A stretch of DNA of 61,825 nt, filler included, from Sluysia triapertura (Eukaryota): the NCBI GenBank assembly GCA_046118255.1. It is 5 parts of 5 records of this genome, joined end to end, with 100 filler letters (N's around TTAATTAATTAA, not from the genome) between each part and the next. Parts side by side here need not be neighbours in the genome. Positions count along the whole stretch, not along the records: positions 48,239 to 61,825 come from JBJNIA010030719.1; 4 more parts are not named here. One strand, 5' to 3'. Under the pieces are notes generated by a model. It was not told the origin of the DNA, did not search any database, and saw only the letters and a program-made list of their open reading frames with translations. This document shows positions 791 to 61,825 of this stretch, piece after piece; the first letter of the stretch is position 1; every line of letters begins with the position of its first letter. The position numbers were made by a program, and so were the translations under genes.

Positions 791-3758
791 AGTTGTACAA
801 TCCATGTGTTGTAGAATTAGTGTCTATTTTGACTATTTAGTGTCTATCTGATAATTTTTAAAAATTTATTATTTATAAATGTATTTGAAGTTGTAGTTTG
901 CATTTTATTTCAGCAATTAAAATGGAACCATTTTTAGGGAATTGGTGAAGTTTTGAATTTCTTTTAAAGATATGAAGTTAAATTATTATTTAATTTGTAA
1001 TTCATTTTAAATATTATAATTTAGATATTCTTCTACTATATTCATTCACATAAGTATATAGAAGAAACGCATTGGAGAAGTGCTATATTATCTGTTTGCA
1101 TAAATGTAGTTCGAATTTTTCGAGATTTTTCATTTTTTATCTCGGTTCGTTTTTAAGATTCTTTATATTTATAATTATTACTCATAATTTTACTGATACT
1201 TTTAATTATATTTATATCTTTCCTCTTATAATACTACTTTATTAGGATTTCAAGTAGTGGTTTCCAAACTTTTGTTCATGAATTCACTATTACTAACTAG
1301 TTGGTTGATTCTGATTAGACATGATGTGAGATTATTTATGTTTGTTCAATGAGCACTGCTTTACAGTCAGTTACGTGATGAGGCTTCTAACTGCATTGAT
1401 TTCTCTTTATAGTGAATACAATGGCGTTAAGATAATTAACACTAAAAGTACCACGACCGGTTACATGAAAATCTTTAGTTTTTACTTTAAAAAATACTAT
1501 GAAATTGTATTGTTTTTTACCGTTTTATGAAACGGCTTTTAATTTTATATATAAACTAATCAATATACATTAAAAAATTATATAATAATCTGATGACGGT
1601 GAAGATATGAATAAGTACATCAAACCTTCGCACGCTTAGTGTTAATAGCTTCTGAAGAATATGCGTAATTAGGGCATCTTGCATACTCGCTCGCGCTTAA
1701 TTAGATTTGGTATAGATCGATCCAGATTTCCTTTCATCATCCGATAATTAATAACTTTCATCTAATTCAACATCAGAGTTATAATTTTTAACTTAATGTT
1801 GTATCTTTGCCATTAGCTGTTTCGTTATAGTCATAACGTTGATTGGTTTTTGATGATAGAATGTTTCAAATGTAAAACGACAATAGGGAATTAAAATTTG
1901 TGTCATACGAAAATTATGTTTTGAGATGATATGAAATTTCATCATAATTTAGTTTTAGATATGAAAGTTAATTTGAATTGTAATATGAGATTTTATAGTG
2001 TTACTTCTGAGAAAAGCTGTTGAGTAGTGTGACTAAAATTTTGTTTATTGTTGTGTAAACAATAGAAGTACTAGGTTGGACCACCAGGACCTAATTTAAA
2101 TTTCGTATAAAGTCAGAGTATGAAGAAAAGAAATTGAAGACAATGTCTTTGGATATGTGGTTCGATCAAAAGACCTAGGAGTAGAAAGGCTAGCAAAAAA
2201 GAGGAAAAAATTACGAACGTAATTTTCATAAGAGTTATAGTGATAGCATTGGTAAAACAGTAAGCGCATAAATCAAAATCTTGCTAAACAATCATAAACA
2301 TTTCAAAAACTAACACATTAATACCAGTTATTAAACAAGTTATTTAATACGATATATCTGCCCGTCTCTATTTAAATTACAGAACGCTTTGCTATTGAGT
2401 TAGATAACTTATCACATTTCAATAAGGGTATTTGCATAGTGCAGTAATTAGATATTTTTCAGAAATTTTACATTAGAATTTGTTTTTTAACAATTGACGA
2501 TATTTTCAATAGGATTAATATCTGGTAAATTTGGAAATCAACTTTCCGAAGTTTGAATTCCAGTTTCAGCAAAATAGATCGAATTAGTATATAAAACCAT
2601 TGTGTCAAAAATAGACTTTGCTAATCTCAGAAAATAACGGCTCTTTTACTACAAATGTCTCAGGATATGTCTTTTTAATTCTAGTTTCTTTAATCTTCCT
2701 AACGATTAGCAAGTTATATTTTCCTAAATTAATTTGGCTATGCATATACATAAAATTTTAATTATAATTTTAAATCTAGGTGAATATAGCTTTCAAATAA
2801 ATTTATGTACTACATTTATTTAAGTTAGTGTTATGAAAATACAGTAAGATTGTTTTGAATATACACTAAGAGATATATTGGCCATATTGTTAATTAATTT
2901 AATGTAATTAAAATGTAAAATACTTGGTTAAATTATTAGTATAATTTGTCTGAATTTAGATTCAATTTACACTTTGAAGTAGAGATTCTATCTGTCCTGA
3001 TCTTAGGATGAAAGTGAATAATTAAACTCTAAAACTAAGGTCTGTTATAAATACTAAAACAATAAAAATTATCAAGAATTTCATAAGGATCCAATCCACT
3101 TGTGTGGAATATTAATATTAATTTTTATTTTAAATGTAAATATTTTTAAATATTTTAGATTAAATACTCATAATGGATAATGTATTTGTTTAATTTAATG
3201 TAAGTAAACACATCTTCGATTATACCAAGTAAAATATATCTTAAATATTTTTACAATGTTTAAGGTTATAACCTTTAAAAAATAGACTTTAAATAAATTT
3301 TAACATAGTAAAAACAATAAATTAACATTTCCAATAAAATTAAATTCAAATAAAATTTAATTATCAATTTATATTTATTACGAACTAACAGTTGTCGTAT
3401 TAATTTATTTACATTATCATATTTTGGTAGTTTCGGCGATTCATTTTGCATTTTCACAATAATACTGAATAAGCGGCAAATGATCCTCTAAATCAATTTT
3501 ATACATTTTTTTGAATTCTAAAACAAATTCGGAAGTAATATAAAAAAAAGAAAAGGAATTTAAACTCGATCTTAAACAAATTTACTAATCAGTTATAAAA
3601 TTAATTACTTTTCAGTAATTAACCTACAAATTATATTATTATACTGTTGTAACTATTAGACCGACTTATTCGAAAAAATGATGAAATTTATATTGGAATT
3701 ACCCAAACCAATTTATCGTAATACGATTTTGGCAGAAGCATTAACTATATACATGTTA

Positions 3759-3806
<48 letters not shown>

Positions 3807-4954
3807 TCAGTTGCCATAGTAACAATTATAGTTATGATCAACAATACCACCTGCTTCAACAGCTCATTAAACCAATTCATGATTTTCTTAAATCTATAGA
3901 GTCACTAGTCGAATTAGAACATGTATTTATATCGTATTTTAAAATGGACGTTTCTCAACCACATAATTTAAAAAGTCGAGAATATCCAAATGCTGAAACA
4001 GTAGAATGTCGTGATTCGTTATTGGGTGCTACTACCACTATAGTAAATATGATTAAGCGCATTGACACAGCTGAAGTTAGTTTGATATTTTTATTTACTA
4101 CATTTACGATAACTAAAAATAAATGACAAAAACAACTAAGATATCGCATGACATTGACGCTTTATCCTCTATGCTAAGAAGAAATAGATTTGAAATTAAT
4201 GTTTTAGTAATTATTTTAAAATATGCGAAAAAATAGAAATGCTATCTTTTAAAGTTTTTAAATTTTTAATGGACATTAAAACAATATTTTCCAATCACAG
4301 ACTTGTAGAACATTACGGGTAATATTGGGACGTTCAATATTTGAAGAAGCCTTTATTGACTTATATAATTGTATTATGCACTGTGATGTAAATAATCAGT
4401 CAAATGATGAATCAGTTTTTAAAATATATAGTATTTTTATATTTAATAGATTTTTATAGATACTTTTTTGACATTTTAAAATGTCTCATTCAATTGGAGT
4501 TACAACTTATGATAAACGTAAATAAAAATGTAGGACAATGCAAAACATTGTCTATAAAAACTACAGAAAGAATGCTGTAAAAATTAACAGAAATTTATAA
4601 TATGGCAAAAATGTACTTTTCAAGAAACAATAATATAATTATCGGTTAATAGTTTTTTAGAAATAAAAATTGAACGTAGCAAATGTTGGCATGAATTATT
4701 TCTAAGTAGTGTATAAAAGGAATAATAGAATAATAAAAATAATAGATCGAAATGAAAAATTATGAATGTTCTGAAGTATTGATATTAATTTGTACGAATT
4801 TTTTGAGTTGATTTACCTGTCATTTAATTGCTGTGTTGAAAGTATTACTTTGCCATGCGAAGATGTAATCAATCATTAAAATGTGTTATCATTTCAAGAT
4901 CAAAATGAGAGTTTTATAAGTAATATCAGAAAATAAAAAATTATTTAATTATCC

Positions 4955-5480
4955 AATTATTTTGGGAAGTTTAGATGAACAAATCCAGATTGATAAAACG
5001 GAAGACCTATAAGTAAACAATTCTGGGCTTTGATAATTGTTTATATAAGCTATTCTCCATGGATTTGTTACGCTTCTTTGATCTTGGACTAATCAATTGT
5101 ATGAATCAACTATTCATACAAACCAGACGAAAGTATACCATAAGTTAAAGAATAATTTGATATACAAATAAGTTGTTCTCATAAATACAATTTGGAGCCA
5201 TTAAGCCGCGATGATTGGGGTCGAAACTGTTTAAATGCGGCTTAAATATTACAATAAATAATGAAAAAATAAATATTTTTTGATCACAATACTTTCTCAC
5301 GCGTTGACCCACGAGTCGCCATTTTCAAAGTAACCATTTTAATAATGATATAATAACTCATGCAACAGTTGGGAGTTATAAAATTTAGGCATTAATAAAT
5401 TCATGGGCTAGTTCCTGAGGCAGTTGAAAATTTTATAAACGTAATTAAATGGAGGCTAACAACAAAAAATGGGTTACAAA
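4955..5480 (+). mobile_element. Merlin (IS1595/ISXO2-like DDE) transposase remnant
   Basis: Ordered decayed motifs GSLDEQIQIDKT (cf. VQIDES), QFWALIIV, STIHTNQTKVYHKL (cf. IHTDEW.AY), SHKYN and GVE/AVENF. Confidence 0.55.
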
Positions 5481-8400
5481 AAGTAGTAAACTTAATTATA
5501 ATTTTTCTACATTAGGTTATTTCTGGACTGTATTTTTACATTGTAAACAGCATTTAGAGGCTATTCTACTTTTGTCACATTATTGATACTATTGTGTTAT
5601 TTTTTTAATTTTATTTCAAAATACCTTTGAAAATTTTTTTAGTTATTATAATCTACTATTTATAAAGAATAGATAAAATATTAATTATATTTTATTCCTA
5701 TAATTAAGGAATTTGAGAGAAATACTGTTAACACTACTAATTTTACTGGCTCTTCAACTGATCAAAATTTACAAAATTGTATTTCACTTTCTGAATCTAT
5801 TTTATTACCAATATTTTCAATATTGATGAATTTATCAAGGTTAACTTTTATTATTTTTTATATATTTTTAAACGAATATTTATCCAAAATAATCAATTTT
5901 ACATTGTTTTGTTTTCGATGAATGCAATTTTAATAGTGTCTTGATTTACTACATGTATGGGTGGTCATAAGTTCACTTTAATTTACGGCCTTTTGAAAGC
6001 AATAAATTAAACAAAATAAATAAGGTTGAATTTTATTTTGAGAATAAAAATTGTAAAAATATAAATAAAATGATAAATTACCATGGTTACTAATTTTATC
6101 TGCACGATCATCAGTGGTAACTGGATTTGAATTTGTTGTAGCTAATAGAGTGTCTTTATTAAATGTATTAATTGACTTCAATTTATCTTAACCAGTTATT
6201 GCTAATGTTATTAAATGTTTAACTTTATATTTTGTAGGATTCAGTGCTTTACAAATATATTGTAGCATATCTAGTAGACTTAAATATATCTACCTTTGTA
6301 AATATCAAAAGACGTTCAAACATATAATATTCATTTCTATAAAAACAAGCAACGTTTTCAGTAAATTGCAATTTACAAAATCAGTAATATTCTATTTTTA
6401 TTTATGAGATAAAAATGTCTCTAGCCATAATAAACTTGCAGCAAATAATATGGATCCTTATGATATGAGAAAAATACTTATTAGTAAATTAAAACTAAGA
6501 CTGACCATACAAAACAAATGAAAATCTACTTGAAAAACATATCAATAATTCTAATTATTTTATAGAGCACATATCTTCCTATGTCTTGCATAATAGCACA
6601 ATAATAATTGCAAAATAACTTCTAATATTATTATAATCTAGAAGTAAATAAAACGTTTTTATTATGAAAAGCGATAAAATTGTCGATATCGTTCGAGAAG
6701 CATTATCAGCAGCATTAGCAGCATGTAAATCACATCATTTACATGTGATTTTTAAAAATAACTATGATTAACTATGTTATGACTCATTTATTATGACTCA
6801 TTTTAATAAATTATTAACAACATTTTTATTTTTAATTTTTCATATGTTGCTATTTTTCAAAAATATAATAAATTGATTTTCAATTAGATCAAAATGTAAT
6901 TTTAAATTTTAAAAAATATATTTGTAGAATCGAAAGTTTGGTTACAATGATGCTACCTTTTCTTAACTGTTTTTAAATTATATTTGCATTAAATTATATT
7001 TTATAATAAAATTGTATTTAAATTATATTCAGAACTGTAAATAAAACATGGAGCAGTGTACATCTTCATAGAGATTTTATGAATATTAATAAAATACCCA
7101 AGTATTACGTGGAAACTGTTGTTTGTAAGAAAAGTAACAGTGCCAAAAGTCGAAAAGATTTTACAGCTGTTAGTATTATACTGAATTGTAATCAAATTTA
7201 TAAAATAAAAATTATAGGTAAAGTTTAATTTTTAAATAACTTATACTTTTATTATATCACTGTGGTATTCTGAATTGCTTTATCCGTTGGTAAAAATTAA
7301 TTTAATAATTTTTTGAATTTTAGAGCATTTTTTGTATATTTATCCAGAAAAATCATTCTTAAGTAAAGAATATAGCAGGACTTGAACCTATCCTTCGATG
7401 AGGTATTACACTATTGTTAATAAATAATACTGCTGAGTAGACACGCAACACGTTTGTGACGCCGGGATGATAGGTCGCTGGTAGCGAACGTGTTTGTTTC
7501 AAATTTTGACAAACAAATTTACGTTTAATCATTCATTCAGATATTGACACAACTTTTTCATGTCAACTTGTCTTAACGTTGTACAGTTCTTTATTTAGAC
7601 GACTCAAGCGGCGTTTTTTGGTTTTCTAAAGGATTTACATAATTTTTCATATCTAAATATTTGTTAGAATTATATATAATTTAATTATATAGAGTAGCTT
7701 TACATAGTTTAAATTTACTTTTATGGTTTCTTTGTCATGATTATGCAATAAGTAGTAATATAATGCTTTTAACTTCCACTTTTTCAGGTTATTTTATTTA
7801 TTTTAATTTAAATCTAATAAAGGTTTTAGATGCAAACAAAAAAATGTCAATGACTTCAAAAAAGAATAAATAATTTTAACCTTGCATTTTAATTTTGATT
7901 TTAAAATATCTAATGATATTGATATTTCATCTACTTCATTTAAGACTTATTGTTAAATTGCTTTTTTAAACTTTAAGTTTTATATCGGTTGATAAATCTT
8001 ACGTTAATTACTTTTTACTTTTACAGTTTTATATGCATTTTTTAGTAATAATTAATTCTACATTAATTTCATTCAAAATATTTCTATCAAAATATTTTGA
8101 TTGAAAGATATTGCATTCTCGGATGAAACAGTTAAGCTTTTTCTCATAAATTAATTCCTTCTTTGAATCTGCTTCAATTAATTTAATTTTATTAAAATTA
8201 TACTTAAAATTTATATTAAGTATATTTTAGGTTGATTATTACCTTGAAACAATGCAGCATTCTTTATCACTATTGTCTGATAATATTTGGTCATTATTGG
8301 GCAATTGTTGTAAAATAATTGGTCGTAACTTCTACAACATACCACAATTGACTCATATAATCATTAATTATGTATTGGTAGATTTTGAATCTTTTCCTAG

Positions 8401-48200: not shown

Positions 48201-50527
48201 NNNNNNNNNNNNNNNNNNNNNNNNNNNNNNNNNNNNNNGATTAGAAAAGAACCCAGCAATATTATTATTATTGTTATTATTATTATTATTATTAATAAAT
48301 TGTTATATTACAATTTGAAGATAAATTTAATTTAAAATGTGTAGATAAATTTATAGTTTAATAATATTTTAAAAATTTTATCAAAGTCAAGACCATCTAA
48401 AATACTATATAAAGAGAACAATAGGTAAGTCAATGCACAATACAAATATACAGTACCAATAACTACTTTTAAATATTTTTCACAAGAATTGTTATTTTAT
48501 AAAACTTTTGGATTTGTTCATTTACGAAGAATTCTTATTTTTACAATTGCTGTGAAAAGGAAAAAATTATTTTCGGAATTTTTCAATCTATAAATTCGGT
48601 TCATCGTTAGTTAAATTTTTTTAAGTATTATGTATTTTAGATAAACTAAATTATTAAAATCATTTCAAAAAAGAATACGAAGTTGATTATAAATTAATCA
48701 TACAAAATTTCATTGTACTAATTATATTTAAATTATATATCTAAATTTTATTGTATTGTAAATTGTACATTTTTATAATTGTTCGAATACTTCGACAAAT
48801 TTATTTATAATTCAGACTTAATAACAAAACCAATTTTTAAATTTTGGGCAGCAAAAAGTATTCATTTAAAATCTAGTAAAATAATCTTTAATCTTCAAAA
48901 AACAAGTTATAAAATCGGCAGTAAAATCTTGACGAGCCGTGGTCAAAATACGGCAGTAAAATCAATACCACTACTAAATTATTTTCATTTAAATTCCGAG
49001 ATTCATTAATTAAGAAATACTACATATTGATATCTTAGGTGCACGATAAACTATTAACTTTCAGAAAATATCGTATCCAATAAACGATAGTAAATTATAA
49101 ATTAAACTACCTAGTTATCCTCGAGTATACATTTATTGCTACCTACGTACTAGCCTTTAAGTGAATAAGTCTAAGACTCACGTTTCTCATTACATTACAT
49201 TTGACAAATCTGGCATCATTATTATTATTTATTCATTTATAATAATAATAATTATTATTATTATATTAGAAGCATTAGTATTAGCATTAGTATTTCTTTT
49301 ATTTAAATACTAGTATTGTTTTTGTTTAGTATTATTATTTTTTTGTTTAAATTCAGAATTTTCTACTTTAAAATAATTATACACTATTTATTTACAATTT
49401 ACAATTTTGTGCTTAAAGTTATGTTCTGATTAACAAAAAAACTGTATAAAATTTTTATATAAAATATTTGCAAGTTCTTAAATTTATCAATGAAATCGTT
49501 TATATAATAAATTAAAGAAATCTTGTTTAAAAATAAAAATCGATATCATTTGAATGAATAAAGTAAATAATAAATTGATGTCTTAATTGGAATCAAATAT
49601 ATTTAATACATATATTTTAATATAATTTCTTAAATATATAAATTGAAATATTATTTATGGTTTCATTTATGTTTATAAAAATTTTGTATTTAAAAATTCT
49701 TTTCTGAAATTGTGTAATGAATTAAAAAATCAATACTTTTTATATTATCGTTATAATAATAATTATGAGTAATTATATGTATATTATGAATCGGTAATAG
49801 ATATTTTCTCTGTACATTAAGTTAATTATTTAATGATTTTTTTCATCATAGTTTCATTTCATTTTATAATCCCGTACTTAATTGTTCGAAATTAACGTAA
49901 CATTGACAATGCAAAATTACAAAAAATGAACCAAATAAAATAATTTTTGCAACTTTATTTACAAAAACATTTATAAATTTATATTTTCAATGGTTTATAT
50001 TTTATATTATCATTTAAAGCATAATTTAACGATTTTCGGCAAACTATCGAACTCTCTTTATTTTGTATTTTCACTGAATCGTAATAGATGTAGCGTACCA
50101 CTTGACATTTCTTCTTAGTTTTATCGTTTTGATGTTGATTTATTAAGAAAATCGCTTATAAGTTGTTCATTCTTATTTTGCTAATAGATATTTCTTTCTT
50201 ATTTTCAACATTTCTATTTACATCAACACAATCTATATAATGCTAAGAAATAACAAGTTTATAAATGGTGGATCTTTTCCTGAAATTCATTTTTGATTGA
50301 TATTGATCAGTTTGTATGTGAAATATTTCTAAAGGGAGAATCATTTAAATCATCGCGTTGTTATTTTCAGATTTTTTTTCTAATTGTGTCAGTTGTCTTT
50401 TTAAATTTCTTTGTCAGAAGAATTACTACTTTTAATTACTAATTTTGTAATAAACGTTTTTCTTAATTTAATTTCAAAAGATAAAAATTTAAACAAAAAC
50501 ATTTAAGCATCATAAGTTTGTATAATT

Positions 50528-51113
50528 CAGGGTCAGATCTAGTGTTTTGAGCATTCTGGGCAAAACAAAATTTGACGTCCTTTCATACAATAATATATAA
50601 ATTTACTGCGAATTGAAAAAATAGTAAAAAAGGCAAAAAATCAAAATTACACAATAAAGAACTGTGTAAAAAATTTATTCATTTAAAAGATAATACAATA
50701 GTTACTCATTTACAAGCGATACAACATATGGAATAACTTAAAGAGCGCATTTGAAGTTTGAGCGACGAAGGAGCGAGAACTTTGAAAAGTAAGTTATGTT
50801 ATTCCTGTTGCATACGTATGACATACAAGATTTCTTTTAATCCTCTTTGTCAAAAATTCAATAATATAGTTAATTAAATTAAAATAAGATTGTAAACAGT
50901 ATACAATATTAAAATAATTAGCGTTGTGACCTTTATTTGGTATTATTAAAGAATAAATTTATTGCTTGCTAAAAAATCGTTGTCTCATGAAAAATGATCG
51001 ATTTTAATTTATAAAATCTAAAAAAAGTAATGAATGTAAAAAAATATTTTATTTTTATATCGACGTCGCTCAATGTTTGGCACCCGGCTTGCCAGCCTCT
51101 TTATCCGGCGTTG
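50528..51113. mobile_element. Degenerate non-autonomous DNA transposon (CAGGGCCGGAT-type ends)
   Basis: CAGGGTCAGATCTAG ... TTTATCCGGCGTTG imperfect TIRs; no clean TSD. Confidence 0.5.
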
Positions 51114-51249
51114 ATTCAATCTCTAAGGATTTTTTCTTGTATTTTTATAGTCTATTGAAATTATTTTTATTTACTATTTCTAGATGCATTTAAACAAAAA
51201 TAATTTGCCATTAAGTTTTTAGAGAAAGATTCATTAACAATGTATTTCA

Positions 51250-52460
51250 TTAAATAGTATTTATGAACGTTAACGTTAGTTGTTAAACACCACTTATCAA
51301 AGTTTTCCACCTGATACCTGTTACTAATGTCAATATTTACTAATATTCGGAATTCTGTTTATCATGGTTAGTGACTGATTTCAGTAGTAATAGTGGCACA
51401 ATATGAAGATTTGGTTTATGTTGGTAAGTTAATTCAAGTGGTATAGGCTGGTATTAAAGTAAATATTTAACAGATACTTGGGGACATGATGTATAGAAAT
51501 CTGAAAAGCATTTAAGCAGTATGTACAATATTATGCGTATGTGCTCCTTTATGTAATGTTTGAACAGTCAAATACTCTGATAGTATATAATATGTCTAAT
51601 TAATTTAGTGCTAATCTGAAATTTTAAATTACCTTTCTAAATTTCTAATTTTACTAATATCTTCAACTGCTTGACTTTGACTTACAACATTTTTCATGAA
51701 CTCTAATTACCTTCTCTCAAATTCAAGATATCTTTATTTAATGCAAGATTTGTAATGTCTCAACATCAATTAATGTATTTTCAAAATTATATACATCAAG
51801 AGTAAGACATTTGTTCTTTTTAAGCTTCAACATAGCTTCCAAATTAAAACCTACTATTTATGTTTGTATTGAAATATTTTTAATATTACTAACTTTATAA
51901 ATTCCTATTGCGTTAACAAATAGATAATAGCTAACAGATAATATATTAGATAATTCAAGATAATTTCAAGACATGCCGCTTCATCCTGAATGTGATTTTA
52001 ACTTTAAAAAATGTCATATTAAATTTAAAATTTAATTTATTTAAAATACACTGTGAACACATCTGTTACATTCAAATAAATAGCGAACGTTCCATACGAT
52101 TTCCAAAAAATCTAACAGAAATAAAACTTAGACTTATATTTATTACAAATGCATATTAAAACAATCTTGGAGTTTAAAAATAAAATATATGATTAATTTT
52201 AAAAATAAAATATAAAAGTTAACGTTACAAACCACCAGGACGCATCCTTCCATATATTTAATTTGAAATTACGTATCCGAAATTTCATAAACTAGAATAA
52301 GGTATAATTTTATATCCACATCTAAAAGTTCCTTGTCTTCTGAGTTAAATGAAGCACAGCCATACAAAAATTGTGAACCATACCAAACGAATCGTGTCTT
52401 TATTCAAAATATGATTTTGGACAAAAATTACGCAGTTATAACCGATAATGCATGAAAATA
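51250..52460 (-). pseudogene. Decayed coding fragments weakly resembling a dynein heavy chain C-terminal domain
   Basis: Ordered peptides FCPKSYF, YMEGC, FYTSCPQVSVK, HIVPL and RILVNIDI...DKW echo dynein F.P..F, GL.LEG, P.Y, R...idL...W. There are many stops and frameshifts. Confidence 0.28.
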
Positions 52461-55039
52461 ATGGATGTAAATTAAACATATAACACAATAAATTATTATT
52501 TAAATTAATTTCCAAAGTTCTAACAATGAATTACTAGAAGCACATATGGTGTGAAATCTTGTCGAGGCACGATTTTAATTAAAAACTTAATGTTGACGTA
52601 TTATGCATTAAAAATAGTTTCCCGTCTGAAAAGTTTCTAAAGAGTAGAGAAAATTATATCAAAAGTTATGTTGATGGGGTAATATGAGAAAATATAGTGT
52701 TACTAAATATTATTTAAAAGATGGAAAATTAATGTACAATGTATAATTAATTAATAACATCAATTATTATTGGAAAATTAGGAGTTTGATGTCACGTTTC
52801 AGATTTAATTACGTCGGTTTGACAAATAGTTTCCAGCTAAGTGAAGTTGAAGAGATTGAGTTTACCTTGTTCGATATTAGATTAGAAGCAAATATGATTA
52901 TAAAACTGTTACGTAAATGAATTAATGCAGAAAAAATAATTGGTAATATGAACCATGCACAAATGAGTATTCTGTTTCCAACGACATTGTGTCGGAAGCC
53001 TTGTGTTTCCATGATTTATTAAAGGATTATAGTTAGTTATTGTTTTGTTGAAACATGAATACATTAGATTTGATTTTTTGGGATATTGCTTTAAATATTT
53101 GGTTTAAATATTTGTGTTCTTCAAAGTAATGGTAAATTAACTATCATTTGATTAGTAAATGAACATTTATCTATAATACTTATTTATAATAGTTGATAAT
53201 TTTTACTTTGTGATTACGATTAAATCTTATTTTAATTTTTGTTTTTTAATTTTTAGACATTTAATAGATAATTTACATTTTTTAAAAAGTATAACACTCA
53301 CACGAATAATTTTATATAATGTAAAAGACAATTTATTTTATAGAAGTTTATCAATCAAGAAAATAGCTTTTTAAAATGCTTTTTTAAGTCTTTTACTCTG
53401 TTTTCACATTGAATGAAAATTGAATTCTTAGTAAAATAAAATAAAATGCATGATTTTCAAGTTCGAAAAACGAAAGTGAATCAATAAAATAAGTAAAAAT
53501 GAAAATTATTATATTAAATTACTTTTATTTTAATTTATAATCAAATCCACACAAAACTATCAATTACATTCAATCATTTACTGTTTCTTCTTCAAAATTT
53601 TAAATACAAATTACTTATTAAAATTAATTTATATTAAATAGTAAACTGTTTCAATATTTTATTATTATTAAATTTTATTATTTCATTTTTCTTTATTACT
53701 TTTTTCCTTCATGATTAAAAAAATGTTTTAATATTATTCAAAATGAACGATGATATGAGTAATACTTCTTATTTGACATCAAAAACTATGATTTTGAATC
53801 CGCTAATGTTATATAATATTGCCAAAGAATTAGAAAAATGACCCAAAATAAAGTAATAATTAAGAAAAGGTGGGTATTTAATTTTGAGTTAATTTAGATG
53901 CTCTTTTAATGATAAATCTAAGTCAGTTTTTTGCGATATTATTCTATAAACTGAACTGTTCACTCTATGGATCATAAGGAAGTTATCTACAAGAATTATT
54001 TATAATTCAATCATTAATTAATATTTTGTTTTCAGAGGAAACATCCGTTTCTGGGAATTATGGTAGTGTAGCGACGTTGAGGTTGAATTTTAGATCTTAC
54101 GGAAAAGATTTTAATAGTAGCTTTAACTGTGAACATTATAAATCCAATAAAAATGATAATCCTTTAGTAATAATATTTGTCAATAACGAAATATAATAAT
54201 AATCGATGAGAACATAATTAATTGTATATTTTGTGAAAAAACAAATATGTCAAATTGAAATAAGCAGTATAATTAAATTAAATAATTTAATTTACAAAAA
54301 AGTTTTAAATTAATTGGAATTTTAAATACGATGAAAAAGTTATGTTACATTAATGATTTAATAAAATATTTAATTTACAAAATATTTTAAATTAATTTGG
54401 ATTAAAAATCACAACAAAGAATTTTTACGAATTTCTACTCCTTGAGTTGCTATCAACACACGATTTTTGGCAATACAAGTTTAATATTAATATAGATCTC
54501 GGCAGTATTTTGATTTTTGAAGATTTTATGATTCAAAATCCGCAAGTCTATTTGCATTAAGTGTAGAGTTCAACTCATTCACCAACCTCTAACACATGCA
54601 ATCACAAATATCCAATACACATTACACCTCCGCCACATCTTATACACACAACAACACTGAAAATATAACACACTTTAAACATAGTACATTAATATACCCT
54701 AAATTAAATAGAATATAATATTTCTTAAGTTAAACAGAATATAACACATTTAAACTACAATAATCTATCACTTAACATCACTTCAATCCGCCGATATCGC
54801 CCTACCCAACTACACCAACATCGTGTCAATTACTTTTTATTACTAATATTGTTATTATTATCACAATCATTGTTACTAACATTACTATTCGATCAATAAT
54901 AAAGTAATTCATGTAACTGTCTTTTTAATACTTAATTATGTATCATTTATCGAAATTGGATTATTATGATCAACATGATTCTAATGACGATTTTGAAGAA
55001 GATCTACCTATCAAATTTACAAAAAAATTGTAAATTTAA

Positions 55040-55445
55040 AGAAGAGGATGCCGTAGATTCGTATATGATTCAGTATGGTAAGATTGGACGTGGTCATTTA
55101 CAATTTATTAAAAATGTCTTCAAAAAATTGGCGAATATGGAATTAATGACGAAAGAAGTATTTATTCCTGTGTCCATTACTCAAGTTGAATTTAACCATT
55201 TTCCTTTACAACAAAAAACTTGCATTGATGTATTATGTGCTACGGACGAAAACAATGTTATCCCGGATGATGAAGTAGCGAGCTTGGCTTATACAAGGTT
55301 TGGTTTACATACTTCACCAATGACTCGATTACAACGAATGCTTTTTTGGTGCCCCAAACTCCGCAACCTTAATTCTTGGCCAAAGCCTGAAAGAACACCA
55401 AGTGATCCTATTGAAGTAACCAGGTGGGCTATAACAAGAATGAAT
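55040..55445 (+). pseudogene. ECSIT: ECSIT (complex I assembly / Toll pathway intermediate) N-terminal domain fragment, intronless with an internal deletion
   Basis: GRGHLQFI...KEVFIPVSITQVEFNHFPLQQKTCIDVL...NNVIPD...FG...PMTRLQRMLFWCPKLRNLNSWPKP...PSDPIEV...RM parallels ECSIT RRGHV.FI...KEVFRP...HYPRQQ.C.I.VL...GVMP...FG...PM...W.P.....NP.P.P...P.DP.EL...M. The segment normally between the KL helix and KEVF appears to be missing. Confidence 0.8.
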
Positions 55446-55498
55446 TTGAAAAAAGATACAGATTCTGAACGTAGTATCTTAGATGATTAATCAAACGC

Positions 55499-55747
55499 TT
55501 GAATACAGGAGGTCTCAGTGCAGCCAATGAGCTAAAGTCTGTATTAAGTTATATGGGTTGCCTAGTTACACCATTATGTCCACCCGCTTTTATTTTGGAT
55601 CAAAAACTTCAAGAAAATAATCAATTTTATCCAAATAGTACCCAATATAAAAGTGTAAAATTGATGTTGCAACAACTGGTATACATTTGCAAAGCAAGTG
55701 GTCATTGGAAATTAATTGAAACACCTCCACCACTCACAATTACTTAA
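55499..55747 (+). pseudogene. C-terminal half of an NADPH-dependent FMN reductase (flavodoxin-like, SsuE/Lot6-type); no N-terminus or ATG
   Basis: GGLSAANELKSVLSYMGCLVTP resembles the family GG..A...L...L..lG....P motif and is followed by a C-terminal helix (VKLMLQQLVYICKA). Confidence 0.55.
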
Positions 55748-56403
55748 AAATAATTGCTTTAATGATTGATGTAACATTTGTTATTTGATTTTAAAAATAT
55801 ACAATAAATTAGGTACTTATAATAATCAATAGTTTGCAATAATAAAACTGATTTACATTACAATATATGTGGAATAGCAATATGCTGTCTGTGTTTTTTT
55901 TCAACCTACATTTTAAATTTAGCTCATTTATCAAAATAGAATAAATTTATTATGATTTAGTAAATATACAAATATATAAGCAAAAAAAAAGAAATTAAAG
56001 CATTGTTTAGCCACAAACATCTGAAAATATTATTGTTGAGTTCAATAATTTGCTCATTCGATTTTTTATTGAATTTTGACTTCATTTGTCAATAGATCTT
56101 CATAGGCTGACAAACCAGTACTAATTCAATGTTTTAGACTTAATTAGACATTAATTTCTAACTGTTATTATATAAATAAATAAATGGCTAAATAAAGTGA
56201 AGGAATGTACTTTAATATTTGATATAATGTTAAGCCATATGATTAACCTTGAAGGTCAAGATTGATAAAATGTTAATTAGGCAATTATCGAATGACAAAG
56301 CAGTTTCTGATTTTTTCTAATATGTTTAAATTTACGACAATTCGAAAATAAACAAAGCCAGCATTCTTCAAAAGTATTCAAAAAAATGAATTTCAAAAAA
56401 GAA

Positions 56404-56495
56404 ATGTCTAGAATGATAGTCAGAGCACGTCATAAATATGTAACTGATGAGATCGATGAATTGGCGGAAGATGATTTAATCAAGCTACTTATTTT
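56404..56495 (+). pseudogene. N-terminal part of an SH3 domain
   Basis: Translation [29 protein letters not shown] fits SH3 VRA.(H/Y).Y....DEL(SF)..DD.I.LL with a 2-codon deletion; the second half of the domain is absent. Confidence 0.5.
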
Positions 56496-56867
56496 TTGAA
56501 AATTGAATCAAATTCTACTCAAAGCTTACACCGTGATGTTTTATTCGAGTCTTCTACAGATTATTTAAGAAATATTGAATTTCTTATTTCGCTATTTCGT
56601 GTTTACAATCAAATGAACAGAGAATTTCGATGCGTCAAAATGCAGCAGGTAATTGGTAAAGAATGCATGAGTGCGGTCGAACAGAATTACGGTAAAGTTT
56701 TAGAAGCACTATTGTGTTTACGAAGCGACGAATCTGTATTTTTAAGACATACTGTTCAACAAGCAATGTCCAATATGTACATGACTTTTCGTAAGAGAGG
56801 CGATACAAGTAAGAAGCCTGCCATGACCGAATCGGCGAGTATTTTACATCAAGATAAAGAGCCTACT

Positions 56868-57010
56868 TCAGAATTCGAAGTAAATGTATTACGTTCTAAA
56901 GCGAAGGAAATATTGATGGAAGATAGTAATGTTCAATTAGTTGATTCTTCTGTAACAGTTTGTGGCGACATGCATGTTCGATTTTATGTCGTAACGGAAC
57001 TTTTTAAGAA
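56868..57010 (+). pseudogene. N-terminal fragment of a PP2A-family Ser/Thr phosphatase catalytic subunit (PP4C-like), fused in frame to unrelated upstream sequence in ORF 56496-57077
   Basis: [45 protein letters not shown] versus PP4C [45 protein letters not shown]. GDxHG has decayed to GDMHV and similarity stops abruptly. Confidence 0.85.
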
Positions 57011-57799
57011 TGACCATACTTTTCTTATGTGGATGGTCAATGTCCTAAAACAAAATTTATTTGCTCGAGAATGTTAGGTAAAATATTTTTTTATATTCAT
57101 TTTAATAATTTAATCGATTTGTGTGAGATTTTTGACGATTATAAGTATTTTTTTCGAATAAAAAAACCGATCCGTGTTATTTTTATACTAAATTTATAGC
57201 TGAAATTAAATATGTTTGCTTTCATTATTGTTCCTTAAATAATTTTGAATTCTTAATTCACAGAATAAAATTTAGTATTAATTTGTTTAATGAACTTGAA
57301 ATACATAATTGTCATAATTATCATCAATATATACCGACCATTGCAATAATCACTGGTTGTCATGATCCTGAAATAAAAAATATCACAATTAGATAAAATC
57401 TGGATAGTAGTATAGCCAAAAATTGTCCACCTCCGTTGCTCTTGATGTATAATTAATATCTTCAATACGGCTCTGTTTGTTACATGTCATGTTTCCGTTT
57501 GATAGTTAATTGCTAAATGTTTAACTTTACTTAATTTCTGTGGGCTCTCATCTATTACATCAAAAAGTTCTATCATTTCACTTGAATTAACATCATTTAT
57601 TTGCTCATGAATTACACACCTTTCGTTTGGTTCCGTGGAATTATAATTCTCAATTTAATTACTCTTTTTGATACGCATTTAGAGGGACTTCGGCCCTTGT
57701 AGAATTATTACTGAATGTCAAGACATTTGAATCTAAATGAGAAGTGGGTAGATCTAAATTATATTGTTCACATTGATGTGCAGTTAAATATCTTGAATC

Positions 57800-58500
57800 A
57801 ACCTGCTAGATTCTCAAGTTATGGTTAACGAATGATGTTTTACGACCTTGAGGTTCGTTTAAAAACTTATTTACAATAGGGCCATTCGTCGGTTGAATTG
57901 AATTTGGTCTTTGAGGATTAACATTTGTGACTCCGGTACAAAGATTGCTAAAAGAGATAACTAAATTATTCGATTGGAAAACATGCAATTTATTGGTATT
58001 AATGATATTTACATATTCATCATCGATAGTGACTTAATAGGTACTTGTTCGATCGAATCCAATAATTCTTGAAGGTTTTCGGATTTCATCATTAAACTTT
58101 ATCATTAAATACTTTCAAACCTTTTATAAAATCCTGGCATGATAATTTTAGATAAATTTGACTGCAAATTTGTATTTAAGATAATGTGTAACAAGTGTGC
58201 TCACATTTGTGTACAGACGGGTTGCAAAACATATATTGTTCTGAAAATTGATGCATAATTTGTTCTCGCGCTTGTACTTTGCGATTACGTGTGACTTTAC
58301 TCAGAAATTGCTGTAGTGCTTCATAACATCGTAAATTTGTATAATCAAAAAATTTTGAAAATTCTATTTCAACAGCTTGACTAAAATCATTTCTTTTAGA
58401 TAAAAGTTTTTCTATATCGATTAATCGGAATCCATTACATTCAAATAAACGTTTTCCTAAGCGTTTTTCTGCTTCTCGATCAACAGGTTTTGAAATTTGA
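57800..58500 (-). pseudogene. EFA6/PSD-family Arf6 GEF remnant: Sec7 domain plus start of PH domain, intronless, with stops and frameshifts
   Basis: Hand translation VDREAEKRLGKRLFECNGFRLIDIEKLLSKRNDFSQAVEIEFSKFFDYTNLRCYEALQQFLSKV...QAREQIMHQFSEQYMFCNP...LSCQDFIKGL...ENLQELLDSI, then GPIVNKFLNEPQGRKTSF. This matches PSD AKRLAKRLY.LDGF...L.K.N.FS..V..EYL.FF.F...RER.L.HFS.RY..CNP and the PH start G...RK.....GKKTP. Confidence 0.75.
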
Positions 58501-60162
58501 TGTTATACTTTAGCTTCATCTTGATTATATACTAATAATTTAATAATATCATTTTATTATGAGTTTCTGGTTAAGCTTTGTTGATTAACTTCCTAACAAG
58601 TTTCGTGCAACATAACTTTTCGAATTTTTGTTTTTTTTGATTCATCCGATTTTAAATAAAATTTTAATTATCTGTTTTTAATTATCATGCTTTTAAAAGC
58701 TTATTTTTAATTCTCAAATTTTTGTTTATTACATAATATTGCTGGTCAAACTTGTTTTAAAATTTTTATTTTTAATCTATATCTAACTTAATGCATGCCC
58801 TTATTTTTTGATTCAATTTCTACTTTTTTAATTTGATAATTTCATCACATGTGATTGGGCGTCCAATTATAACAGTAATGTCAGCATGAATAAATAGTAA
58901 TGATTAGAGGTCCGATCAACGAGAGTAGACATCATAATTGCCTGAGATAGTCATTATCATCTTGACTATGTGTCTGTCACCATGTGGTTATAAAATTAAA
59001 TTTATAAGCACTTAAGATATGGTGACAGGTAATTGAGTTGTTGAGCAAAATCATCTGTTGTACTTGATGGAGATTAAATTGAAAATTTTAATGATATAAA
59101 TAATAATAATGATAATAAAATGATTGACAAAATAATGATAGTTAAAGTGCATAAATCTTTTGCTTTTACAATACGATCTTTCTTTAGCTTTATTTTACTC
59201 TTTCTTAACATATTTAAACTAAAATCTTTTAACTTTATGTCTTGAGATAAATTTGGTTTTTTAGTGATTTACAATGGTTTTAAAGTGATTTGAAGTGTGA
59301 ATTTGATGTTTTTCAAAATGTTAAAGAATAAGTGTTAATGATTGTGAAATTGAATTATTTTAGATTGGTTTTATGATGTGCATTTGATAGTTTAAGATGT
59401 AATTGTACTTTTAATGTTATAAGATTATGAATAAATATTTTAAATGGAAGTTTAAATATACATTGATTTGAAAATCATTATGGTTTGGATGTTAATAGAT
59501 TCTAAATTTAAAATGTTTTGAGGTATGAAAATTGATTTTAATGAATTTAAAAAGAATGTAAAATATAAAAAAGATTTTGGTGGATTCTGAAAAGGCATAA
59601 TGTAGAATGTTAATGAATGTGAAAATATGATTGAAATGATTGTTTAAATTTTAAGCCAGAAGTTGGCCATCACACTGATTTGTTGACTTTTGTCAGTATG
59701 ATCTCAAACACATCATCGACAAGACAATTCGTACTGACATTGAGGTGTTATTTTCCTTTTAAAATAATTTAATTTTGTTTTAATTCAAATAAATGATATT
59801 TAAAAGTATTATTGAAAAAATACTTTCTTATTTATTTGATCCAGTATTATACATTTATGTTACCGCGATTTCGAAATTTATTACTTTATAAGATTGAATA
59901 TTCACAACTACAAACCAACAAACAACCAACGAGTTCAATTTAAACGTATTGCGAAATGGAGATTACAAGAATGTGGTATAATACAATCGTATTAGTCTTG
60001 TAATCGAAAATTTGTTTCTGATTATAGTTAGATTAAGTATTTGTTTTTTTAATATGATGTTTCAATTTGTTTGGGTCAATTGTCCCATTAAAATTAGAAA
60101 TATTTCCGCGCAGCACTTTTGAATAAATGTAATTATTTTTTTAATACTTATTATACCTTCAG

Positions 60163-61067
60163 ATCAAGTAATCGAGCCATTAGTGAGCAAAAACAAGCAG
60201 AAGAAAGTATTCGAGTTGAAGTTGAAGCAGCTACATTACGAATAGCAGAAATTAATCGTGATTTAGAAGCAGTTGTTACTCAGTTAGGTGAAGCCAGAGT
60301 TGAGAAACATGAATCATCGCGTGCTGCAAAAAAGCAAGAATTAATAGAAAATTTAAAGCGTTTGTTTCCTGGTGTGGTAGGCATTTTTTAATATGTAATT
60401 ACCCAGTAATAACAATTAATTAAAATCTAATTTATTAATTTAAATTATTTTTCAAAATATCTATCGATTGCTGACACTTTCAGCAAGTTTTCCAAGATCA
60501 TTAGATTTCGCTCTATTAAACATTTTGTCATGTCAAATCTGAAGTGCACGGAGACACCGAGTTTTGACGACCATTTTTAGTATTGTATAAACCTTGGTAC
60601 GTTTAGTGTTAAATGATTCATGAATTTAATATATTTGGAAAGGTAACATTTTTTGAAGGATTCAAAGAATTGATATCAAAATTAACGTAAAATACTTATT
60701 TTTGATCCGCTATAATAATTATTCTTAATCTTATCACCACATGGCTTTTGAAGCAGTTGTTCGACTTGTTTTCAGTTAGCGAATATGAATTGAAAATTAT
60801 GCATAATATATACTCATAATATATACTCATAATAACACAAACATTACCATTGTAGCATGGTCGTTTACTTGAAATGTGTCAACCTTCCCATCGCAAATAT
60901 CAAGTTGCTATAACTAAAGTACTTGGCAAATATATGGATGCTATTGTTTGCGATACTCAAAAAACAGCAAAAGATTGCATACAGTATATGAAGGATCAAA
61001 GAATTGAACCGGAAACATTTTTACCTCTAGATTTTCTTGATGTACGACCTATTGATGAACAATTAAG
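60163..61067 (+). CDS. SMC1: Structural maintenance of chromosomes 1 (cohesin), two internal exons 60163-60376 and 60856-61067 (coiled coil into hinge)
   Basis: Spliced translation ...[25 protein letters not shown]|[61 protein letters not shown] is the SMC1 hinge signature; splice sites are canonical. Confidence 0.93.
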
Positions 61068-61444
61068 GTTAATTATAAGTTGTTTTTATGTACCATATTT
61101 AAAATTGATTAAATTATACATTGTTAATAAAATGTAATGAAATTGTTCATACATTTGATAAGCAGATGTGCTAGAACCTGTCCATATTTTCAGACACATG
61201 ACATAATGCTGGGCAATCGAACTTGATCCACGCATAGTACATTCGCGATAAGATGAAGTTATGCTACATTTGTCACTATCTGAACTTTTGTACGAAGTAG
61301 TAGACGTTCAACCTTTCTTGGTTCTATTAGGAATGTTTTCATGAATTACTTAACTATTAGTGTCACCTATCTTTAATATTTCCTGTTTTTTGATCTGAGA
61401 TTCGAATCCCTTTAGGCTTGTGCTTATTTGCTTTTTATCTTTAA

Positions 61445-61825
61445 TTAAAACCTCTTGTGGATCTTAGTGAGTTTCTTAGTGTTTTTTAATTGAATTATGG
61501 GGTGTTGTGATGTTATTAATGATGTTATTATCTGTGGGCTGTTATATTTTAAAGTTTTAAAAGATTTCGAAGGCCTTGCTTTATTCATGAAATAAGAACA
61601 TTGAAAATATTTACTTTTATGAATATCATGTTTGTCGTTAGTGTAAGAGGAACACGGCAAACTAAACATTATGGTATTGGGTCGTGCTGTTTTTATGAAT
61701 TTGAAAGTTTCGTAAAGTTCGACCTCAACCGACTCTGGTACTATACAGAGGACTCTTTTGTTATCGGAAGGTTCAACTCGAACTTTATAAGTGTCGTATT
61801 CAGATCTTTTTTTTATCACAACGTC
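61445..61825 (-). mobile_element. Probable non-LTR retrotransposon ORF1 C-terminal remnant in an SMC1 intron
   Basis: YDTYKVRVEPSDNKRVLCIVPESVEVELY resembles the CR1/L2 ORF1 Y.SFKV.V...D.......P.GV.V motif. Confidence 0.35.

Follow-up and report, generated by a model that had tools for sequence, protein, structure and literature searches.

Gene-fragment capture in known systems and a gene-fragment cassette in Sluysia

Helitrons capture gene fragments in animals, as described for bat Helitrons (PMC4224331) and for Helraiser (PMC4778049), and Pack-TYPE DNA transposons, such as Pack-MULE and Pack-CACTA/Tgm-Express, likewise carry gene-fragment cargo (PMC8903248, PMC1947982). These are among the closest described systems to a cassette of broken host-gene pieces located at 54.9–58.6 kb in a stretch of DNA from Sluysia triapertura (Eukaryota; GenBank assembly GCA_046118255.1). 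The window, i.e., the whole stretch, is 61,825 nucleotides long, filler included, and is joined from five parts of five records; the piece analysed here covers positions 48239–61825 (13.6 kb, record JBJNIA010030719.1), has a GC content of 26% and contains 0 N. The cassette is embedded in AT-rich, repeat-rich DNA. The reading towards which we lean is that it represents an amplified, neutrally decaying mosaic of non-functional host-gene fragments, partly of probable mRNA origin.

Like Helitron-captured sequence, the locus consists of multi-copy units that carry unrelated host-gene pieces on either strand and decay mostly neutrally. It differs in that neither 5′-TC/3′-CTRR ends nor a subterminal hairpin or Rep/helicase relic was found in the 13.6-kb piece, the fragments show no retained introns and the copies are structurally heterogeneous. 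The likeness to Pack-TYPE elements would lie in a non-autonomous vehicle, the chimeric gene-fragment cargo and the possible chimeric open frames. However, neither of the features that define Pack-TYPE elements, terminal inverted repeats and target-site duplications, was found here; these elements have also been described chiefly from plants and capture genomic DNA with its introns. A third relevant machinery is that of long interspersed nuclear elements (LINEs), which makes processed (retro)pseudogenes as well as chimeras generated by template switching of the reverse transcriptase. The block carrying an ECSIT fragment resembles such retro-chimeras in its 5′ truncation, its uninterrupted coding sequence with a stop and an AATAAA at the 3′ end, its abrupt junctions and its neutral decay; unlike them, it shows no poly(A) tail or target-site duplication, and the pieces are present in 5–25 copies. 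Single retro-insertions would not be expected to give this copy number, for which a further round of amplification is needed. Although the cassette works like cargo amplification, we do not file it in the Helitron, Pack-TYPE or LINE retro-chimera families, because searches for the terminal features that define each of them found none. If a defined element does carry the pieces, the locus would be an animal case in which fragments of several genes are captured and exons possibly shuffled, a process with ample documentation from plants and bats but little from elsewhere.

Host-gene fragments and their copies

Three of the six to seven fragments named in the initial annotation of this DNA pass family tests, i.e., those of ECSIT, of a phosphatase and of a Sec7 domain, and the other pieces do not (Table 1). 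The tight packing of unrelated gene fragments that the annotation described is borne out, as broken pieces of at least three genes lie within 3.7 kb on both strands. Open frames in the piece exceed chance in length and number: the longest spans 200 codons, whereas none of 200 block shuffles gave a frame longer than 147, and there are 8 frames of at least 85 codons, against a shuffle mean of 1.4.

The ECSIT fragment matches ECSIT_N (PF06239) with E=2.5e-28 (99 bits; cut-off 25.9) over profile positions 56–167 of 181, and a profile of 16 full-length ECSITs aligns to it with E=6e-29 (hhalign). As had been reported, the piece is truncated: it is without the N-terminal ~80 residues, and no remnant of ECSIT_C (PF14784) was found with the full-length ECSIT profile in any frame of the 13.6-kb piece. 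In the alignment to the 16 full-length proteins, 13 residues are also missing from FGVHKDLEVYKAL, the most conserved block of ECSIT. An ATG-to-stop open reading frame (ORF) of 174 aa nevertheless runs through the fragment (54966–55490). In an exhaustive search of 1.84 billion proteins, the closest relative, a protein of 241 aa (P0001), is 47% identical to the piece, and no protein among those searched exceeds this identity.

An 86-codon frame begins at 55487, where the ECSIT frame ends, with a shift of one base. This meeting point, together with the frame shared by the helical and phosphatase pieces described below, agrees with the abrupt and nearly or fully in-frame junctions noted earlier. 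The frame looks coding, with a GC content of 0.40 at codon positions 1+2 versus 0.23 at position 3. Its former assignment to a flavin mononucleotide (FMN) reductase was not upheld: Pfam, NCBIfam and PDB give no match up to E=10, and the only lead is a weak one to FMN_red (PF03358) from a language-model atlas (rank 7, score 0.90). An AlphaFold2 (AF2) single-sequence model of the frame consists of helices only and, with a predicted local distance difference test (pLDDT) score of 66, is too poor for structure search. The possibility that the frame is an ECSIT_C tail was considered and rejected as unsupported (hhalign E=0.24 over 13 columns, no hmmsearch match).

The phosphatase piece lies at the end of a 200-codon frame (56475–57074, plus strand), in which residues 130–178 (approximately nt 56862–57008) align to residues 20–68 of PP2A C-alpha with E=4.4e-8 (phmmer, PDB) and ~55% identity to the human protein. 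The PP4C-like phosphatase of the initial annotation thus stands as a PP2A/PP4-type N-terminus, although only 49 residues long and broken at its GDxHG metal-binding motif, where GDVHGQF has become GDMHVRF. A stop at 57075, ~22 codons past this motif, closes the frame. Of the PPP-family catalytic core (GDxHG, GDxVDRG, GNHE), only the part within residues 20–68 aligns, and Pfam Metallophos does not match the piece. The first 128 codons of the same frame form a helical segment without a match in Pfam or PDB; HEAT-like helical repeats are a lead from the atlas, with recognition below the tool threshold, and the AF2 single-sequence model of the whole frame is mostly helical and too poor for structure search (pLDDT 37). 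Upstream, the 62-codon frame that had been called an SH3 domain loses that name, as no SH3 family matches it at E≤0.1; its codon periodicity is weak (GC 0.29 versus 0.24).

On the minus strand, the Sec7 frame (58179–58502) matches PF01369 with E=3.9e-16 (59.6 bits; cut-off 22) over profile positions 30–129 of 183, and ARNO aligns to the fragment with E=5.6e-10. The catalytic Glu, or glutamic finger, is replaced (RLPGEAQ aligns with RNRKVQ), and the frame is bounded on both sides by in-frame stops (TAA at 58503–58505 and a stop at 58176–58178). Of the EFA6/PSD Sec7-PH piece proposed earlier, the Sec7 domain is retained, with EFA6/PSD as its putative subtype; the PH part (57256–57486, minus strand) has no family match. 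Two short candidate continuations of the Sec7 domain (58095–58175 and 58023–58085, minus strand) are also without a match in Pfam or PDB. By eye, they resemble "MSCQxFI" and "YWSIRSEKL", which we take to be EFA6 motifs and use as a lead only. Pfam and PDB searches found no family match for the four nearly open minus-strand segments further to the left, where the former PH piece falls; three of the four show codon periodicity.

Copies were assessed in a single public run of this organism (X1, Logan contigs), aligned to 54700–58700; 64% of sampled 31-mers of the stretch are present in it. The run is possibly the assembly's own sample, in which case it is not independent proof of adjacency or copy number, and contig depth serves as a rough guide only to the latter. 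A total of 551 contigs of 90–99% identity fall on this region, 91 of them at ≥99%, 176 at 95–99% and 284 at 90–95%. Exact-match contig depth is 9.5–19, with ~15 corresponding to single-copy sequence. Summed depth is far higher over the two blocks of fragments than over the spacer between them (Table 1); it is 130–260 on the phosphatase piece and 77–340 on the Sec7 piece, and drops from ~84 to 24 over 55640–55900, where an AATAAA (55803–55808) lies 3′ of the 86-codon frame. We read these depths as ~5 diverged copies of the ECSIT block and 10–25 diverged copies of the phosphatase/Sec7 block in the organism.

Table 1. Features of the cassette and its surroundings, with positions in the window and summed contig depth in run X1.
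Feature	Position	Strand	Basis or remark	Summed depth
High-copy G-poor low-complexity repeat adjoining the cassette on the left	54700–54967		contig depth, composition	2600–7000
ECSIT block with adjoining 86-codon frame	54936–55744	+		74–102
ECSIT N-domain fragment	54936–55487	+	Pfam PF06239 ECSIT_N, hhalign
86-codon open frame (formerly FMN reductase)	55487–55744, stop 55745–55747	+	coding-like
Spacer between the two repeated blocks	55772–56307		single-copy depth	15–28
Phosphatase/Sec7 block	56308–58585	both		61–384
62-codon open frame (formerly SH3)	56311–56496	+	no SH3 family match
Helical segment, first 128 codons of the 200-codon frame	56475–56861	+	in frame with the phosphatase piece
Phosphatase (PP2A/PP4-type) catalytic-subunit N-terminal fragment	56862–57074	+	phmmer to PP2A C-alpha
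Four nearly open segments (75, 48, 55 and 77 codons)	57256–58033	−	two frames, each with a single interrupting stop
Sec7 (Arf-GEF) domain fragment	58179–58553	−	Pfam Sec7, ARNO alignment
Two SMC1 hinge-region exons, outside the cassette	60161–60376 and 60856–61065	+	SMC_hinge Pfam E=5e-15; SMC1A hinge E=5.6e-31

The copies are not uniform. Individual variant positions in the cassette are carried by up to 9 different contigs, some copies have alternative junctions or indels (e.g., 55278 to 55420, 57432 to 57497, and within 57406–57497) and 10 loose-end contigs diverge after 57406. Other copies of the left flanking repeat diverge after ~54831, with loose ends at 54831/54834 and 54900/54901. Both edges of the spacer are bridged by contigs (55699–55914 and 55885–56411). 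We read the copies as structurally heterogeneous, and the spacer that joins the two blocks here as unique or much more diverged. Because a spacer at single-copy depth splits the blocks and the copies are heterogeneous, one discrete element with a fixed fragment order is disfavoured.

Among the 40 between-copy variants visible out of 124, 29 lie inside open frames, where they comprise 23 non-synonymous, 6 synonymous and 0 stop changes; all three changes in ECSIT are non-synonymous. The neutral expectation, taken from the substitution spectrum of the run itself, is 24% synonymous and 6% stop, under which six or fewer synonymous changes have a probability of P=0.44. Since the synonymous fraction matches this expectation, there is no sign of purifying selection among the copies, and their differences look neutral. 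In most fragments, GC content is 0.34–0.41 at codon positions 1+2 versus 0.21–0.29 at position 3, the Sec7 piece having the sharpest contrast of the fragments (0.39 versus 0.16), and the corresponding values in two neighbouring SMC1 exons are 0.43–0.49 versus 0.14–0.16. The weaker contrast of most fragments is as expected for coding sequence that has partly relaxed toward the 26% GC background. PP2A is normally more conserved than SMC1, yet the identity of the phosphatase piece to its human counterpart (~55%) is below that of the neighbouring SMC1 exon to human SMC1A (~66%).

Origin of the cassette and alternative explanations

In the decaying-mosaic reading, the pieces would have been copied from unrelated host genes, namely ECSIT, a PP2A-type phosphatase and a Sec7 guanine-nucleotide exchange factor for Arf (Arf-GEF), together with several further coding-like stretches. 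The ECSIT block, at least, may have begun as an mRNA-derived retro-pseudogene, since it is a 5′-truncated, uninterrupted coding sequence followed by a stop and the AATAAA. Later, the blocks would have multiplied passively along with the repeat DNA around them, through segmental duplication or through a non-autonomous mobile element with ends beyond the defined region, and the pieces would encode no working protein. For annotation purposes, the ECSIT-, phosphatase- and Sec7-like frames are then to be treated as repeated pseudogene fragments and not as genes; they could otherwise distort the assignment of orthologues or the prediction of small-RNA targets in this genome.

The initial annotation took the lack of introns to favour an mRNA-templated route. 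This is supported by a relative (P0005) whose ECSIT gene spans 10.4 kb and has at least three introns within the region that is uninterrupted here. However, in another relative (L003), ECSIT_N lies in one uninterrupted ORF, so the absence of introns is suggestive of an mRNA route, not diagnostic of it.

Several observations weigh against the mosaic. The case of L003 means that the lack of introns is maybe ancestral. Because P0001, the closest ECSIT, also terminates immediately past the N-domain, the apparent C-terminal truncation may be the normal state of the lineage. Neither a poly(A) tract nor a flanking target-site duplication is seen at the ECSIT block, despite the AATAAA. Stop-free frames of 174–200 codons are long for old pseudogenes. 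Finally, the copy numbers derive from one run of contigs that is maybe the assembly's own sample.

It is also conceivable, if unlikely, that a discrete non-autonomous DNA transposon of the Helitron or Pack-MULE/Pack-CACTA type captured DNA fragments and amplified them as cargo. Such an event would fit the clustering of several unrelated, multi-copy gene pieces on either strand of a few kb, the very high-copy repeat that adjoins the left side and the two compositionally skewed blocks that flank the region. The search for a vehicle in the 13.6-kb piece speaks against it. Terminal inverted repeats were sought and only low-complexity AT-rich inverted matches were found; there are no long terminal repeats, long direct repeats or internal repeats, self-BLAST giving one direct match of 59 nt, and no Rfam family is present. 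No perfect GC-rich hairpin (stem ≥6 bp and GC ≥60%) occurs in the piece, although Helitron ends could lie outside it or be AT-rich. A Pfam scan of 79 open segments of ≥38 codons returned no transposase, reverse transcriptase, integrase, protease or Rep-helicase domain, although non-autonomous copies would lack Rep/helicase anyway. The single-copy-depth spacer that divides the cassette and the differing points at which copies break also argue against a discrete transposon. Furthermore, DNA-level capture normally brings parental introns along, and none are evident in the fragments, as judged without the parent genes.

The skewed blocks are a G-poor one (54539–54838; 8–11 G versus 35–43 C per 150 nt), which belongs to the very high-copy repeat, and a C-poor one (59339–59638; 3–4 C versus 27–28 G per 150 nt), and they bracket the cassette in mirror orientation. 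As diverged inverted termini they were rejected, their alignment score being below that of shuffles; they possibly arose when an old repeat underwent deamination-type hypermutation on one strand, or else represent a skewed satellite.

More doubtful still is a novel non-autonomous element, lacking the terminal structures by which capture-prone transposons are known, that would gather mRNA-derived host-gene pieces into chimeric frames and multiply them to tens of copies. The initial annotation had supposed that an unrecognised cargo-collecting element is operating in this lineage. The multi-copy state of the pieces is what an amplified cassette predicts, but no element could be defined and the copies drift neutrally; because the differences between copies look neutral, there is no sign of an element that is active at present.

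It seems improbable that some parts are real genes, such as a short two-exon ECSIT with a 38-nt micro-intron and its paralogues. The intact 174-codon ATG-to-stop ORF and the coding-like periodicity of the 86-codon frame are in line with this proposal, as is the excision of a candidate GT..AG micro-intron at 55471–55508 (plus strand), which fuses the ECSIT and 86-codon frames exactly. Among relatives, L003 has an ECSIT_C ORF 29 nt past its ECSIT_N ORF, and P0001 ends at the same point as the fragment. However, the donor of the candidate intron (GTAGTA) is weak, and a frame-restoring GT..AG pair is likely to arise by chance. The 13-residue gap falls in the most conserved block of ECSIT, and the 86-codon frame has no detectable similarity to ECSIT_C. 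The changes between copies are neutral, including those in ECSIT (3 of 3 non-synonymous), and catalytic residues are missing from both the phosphatase and the Sec7 piece, which also carry stops. These points speak against function in the present copies; the founding copy may conceivably have been a short ECSIT-like gene with two exons. An assembly artefact, i.e., repeats collapsed or joined into a chimeric contig so that the adjacency of fragments is unreal, would suit a short piece of a repetitive region with just 64% of its sampled 31-mers in run X1, but it is highly improbable, as contigs with 0–5 differences bridge both spacer edges as well as 57377–57574 and 58135–58467, and the 55487 junction has no listed joint or loose end in this run, which is maybe the assembly's own sample.

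Neighbouring genes and minor features

The cassette is followed on the right by two well-conserved exons encoding the hinge region of SMC1 (cohesin), which show no defects and probably belong to a real gene. They are joined across a GT-AG intron of ~480 nt, with splice sites read from the sequence, and this genome accordingly has ordinary introns. The presence of ECSIT and of an SMC1 with such an intron suggests that the AT-rich genome is that of an animal. The first visible exon has its splice acceptor at 60160, ~1.6 kb downstream of the cassette, and earlier exons would therefore be expected upstream; the cassette may thus lie inside an SMC1 intron, although no upstream exon was recognised. 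A decayed third SMC1 exon at 61162–61300 was considered and is unconvincing by eye; the next exon is probably beyond the piece.

On the left, a dynein-like piece had been placed near 51.25 kb. There is no dynein match at this position; instead, phmmer against PDB weakly matches a 63-codon open frame (51170–51358, minus strand) to Reelin repeats, with E=0.003 and three sub-repeat alignments. The frame may represent an exon or one more gene fragment. At the other end, open frames on both strands of 61448–61825 run off the piece (126 codons on the minus strand, 91 on the plus strand); no family or homologue was found for either, and the minus frame shows no GC contrast between codon positions. 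Between the Sec7 piece and SMC1, in otherwise featureless DNA, a 10-bp inverted repeat is present at 58950–59035, with its two arms, CTGTCACCAT and ATGGTGACAG, ~40 nt apart.

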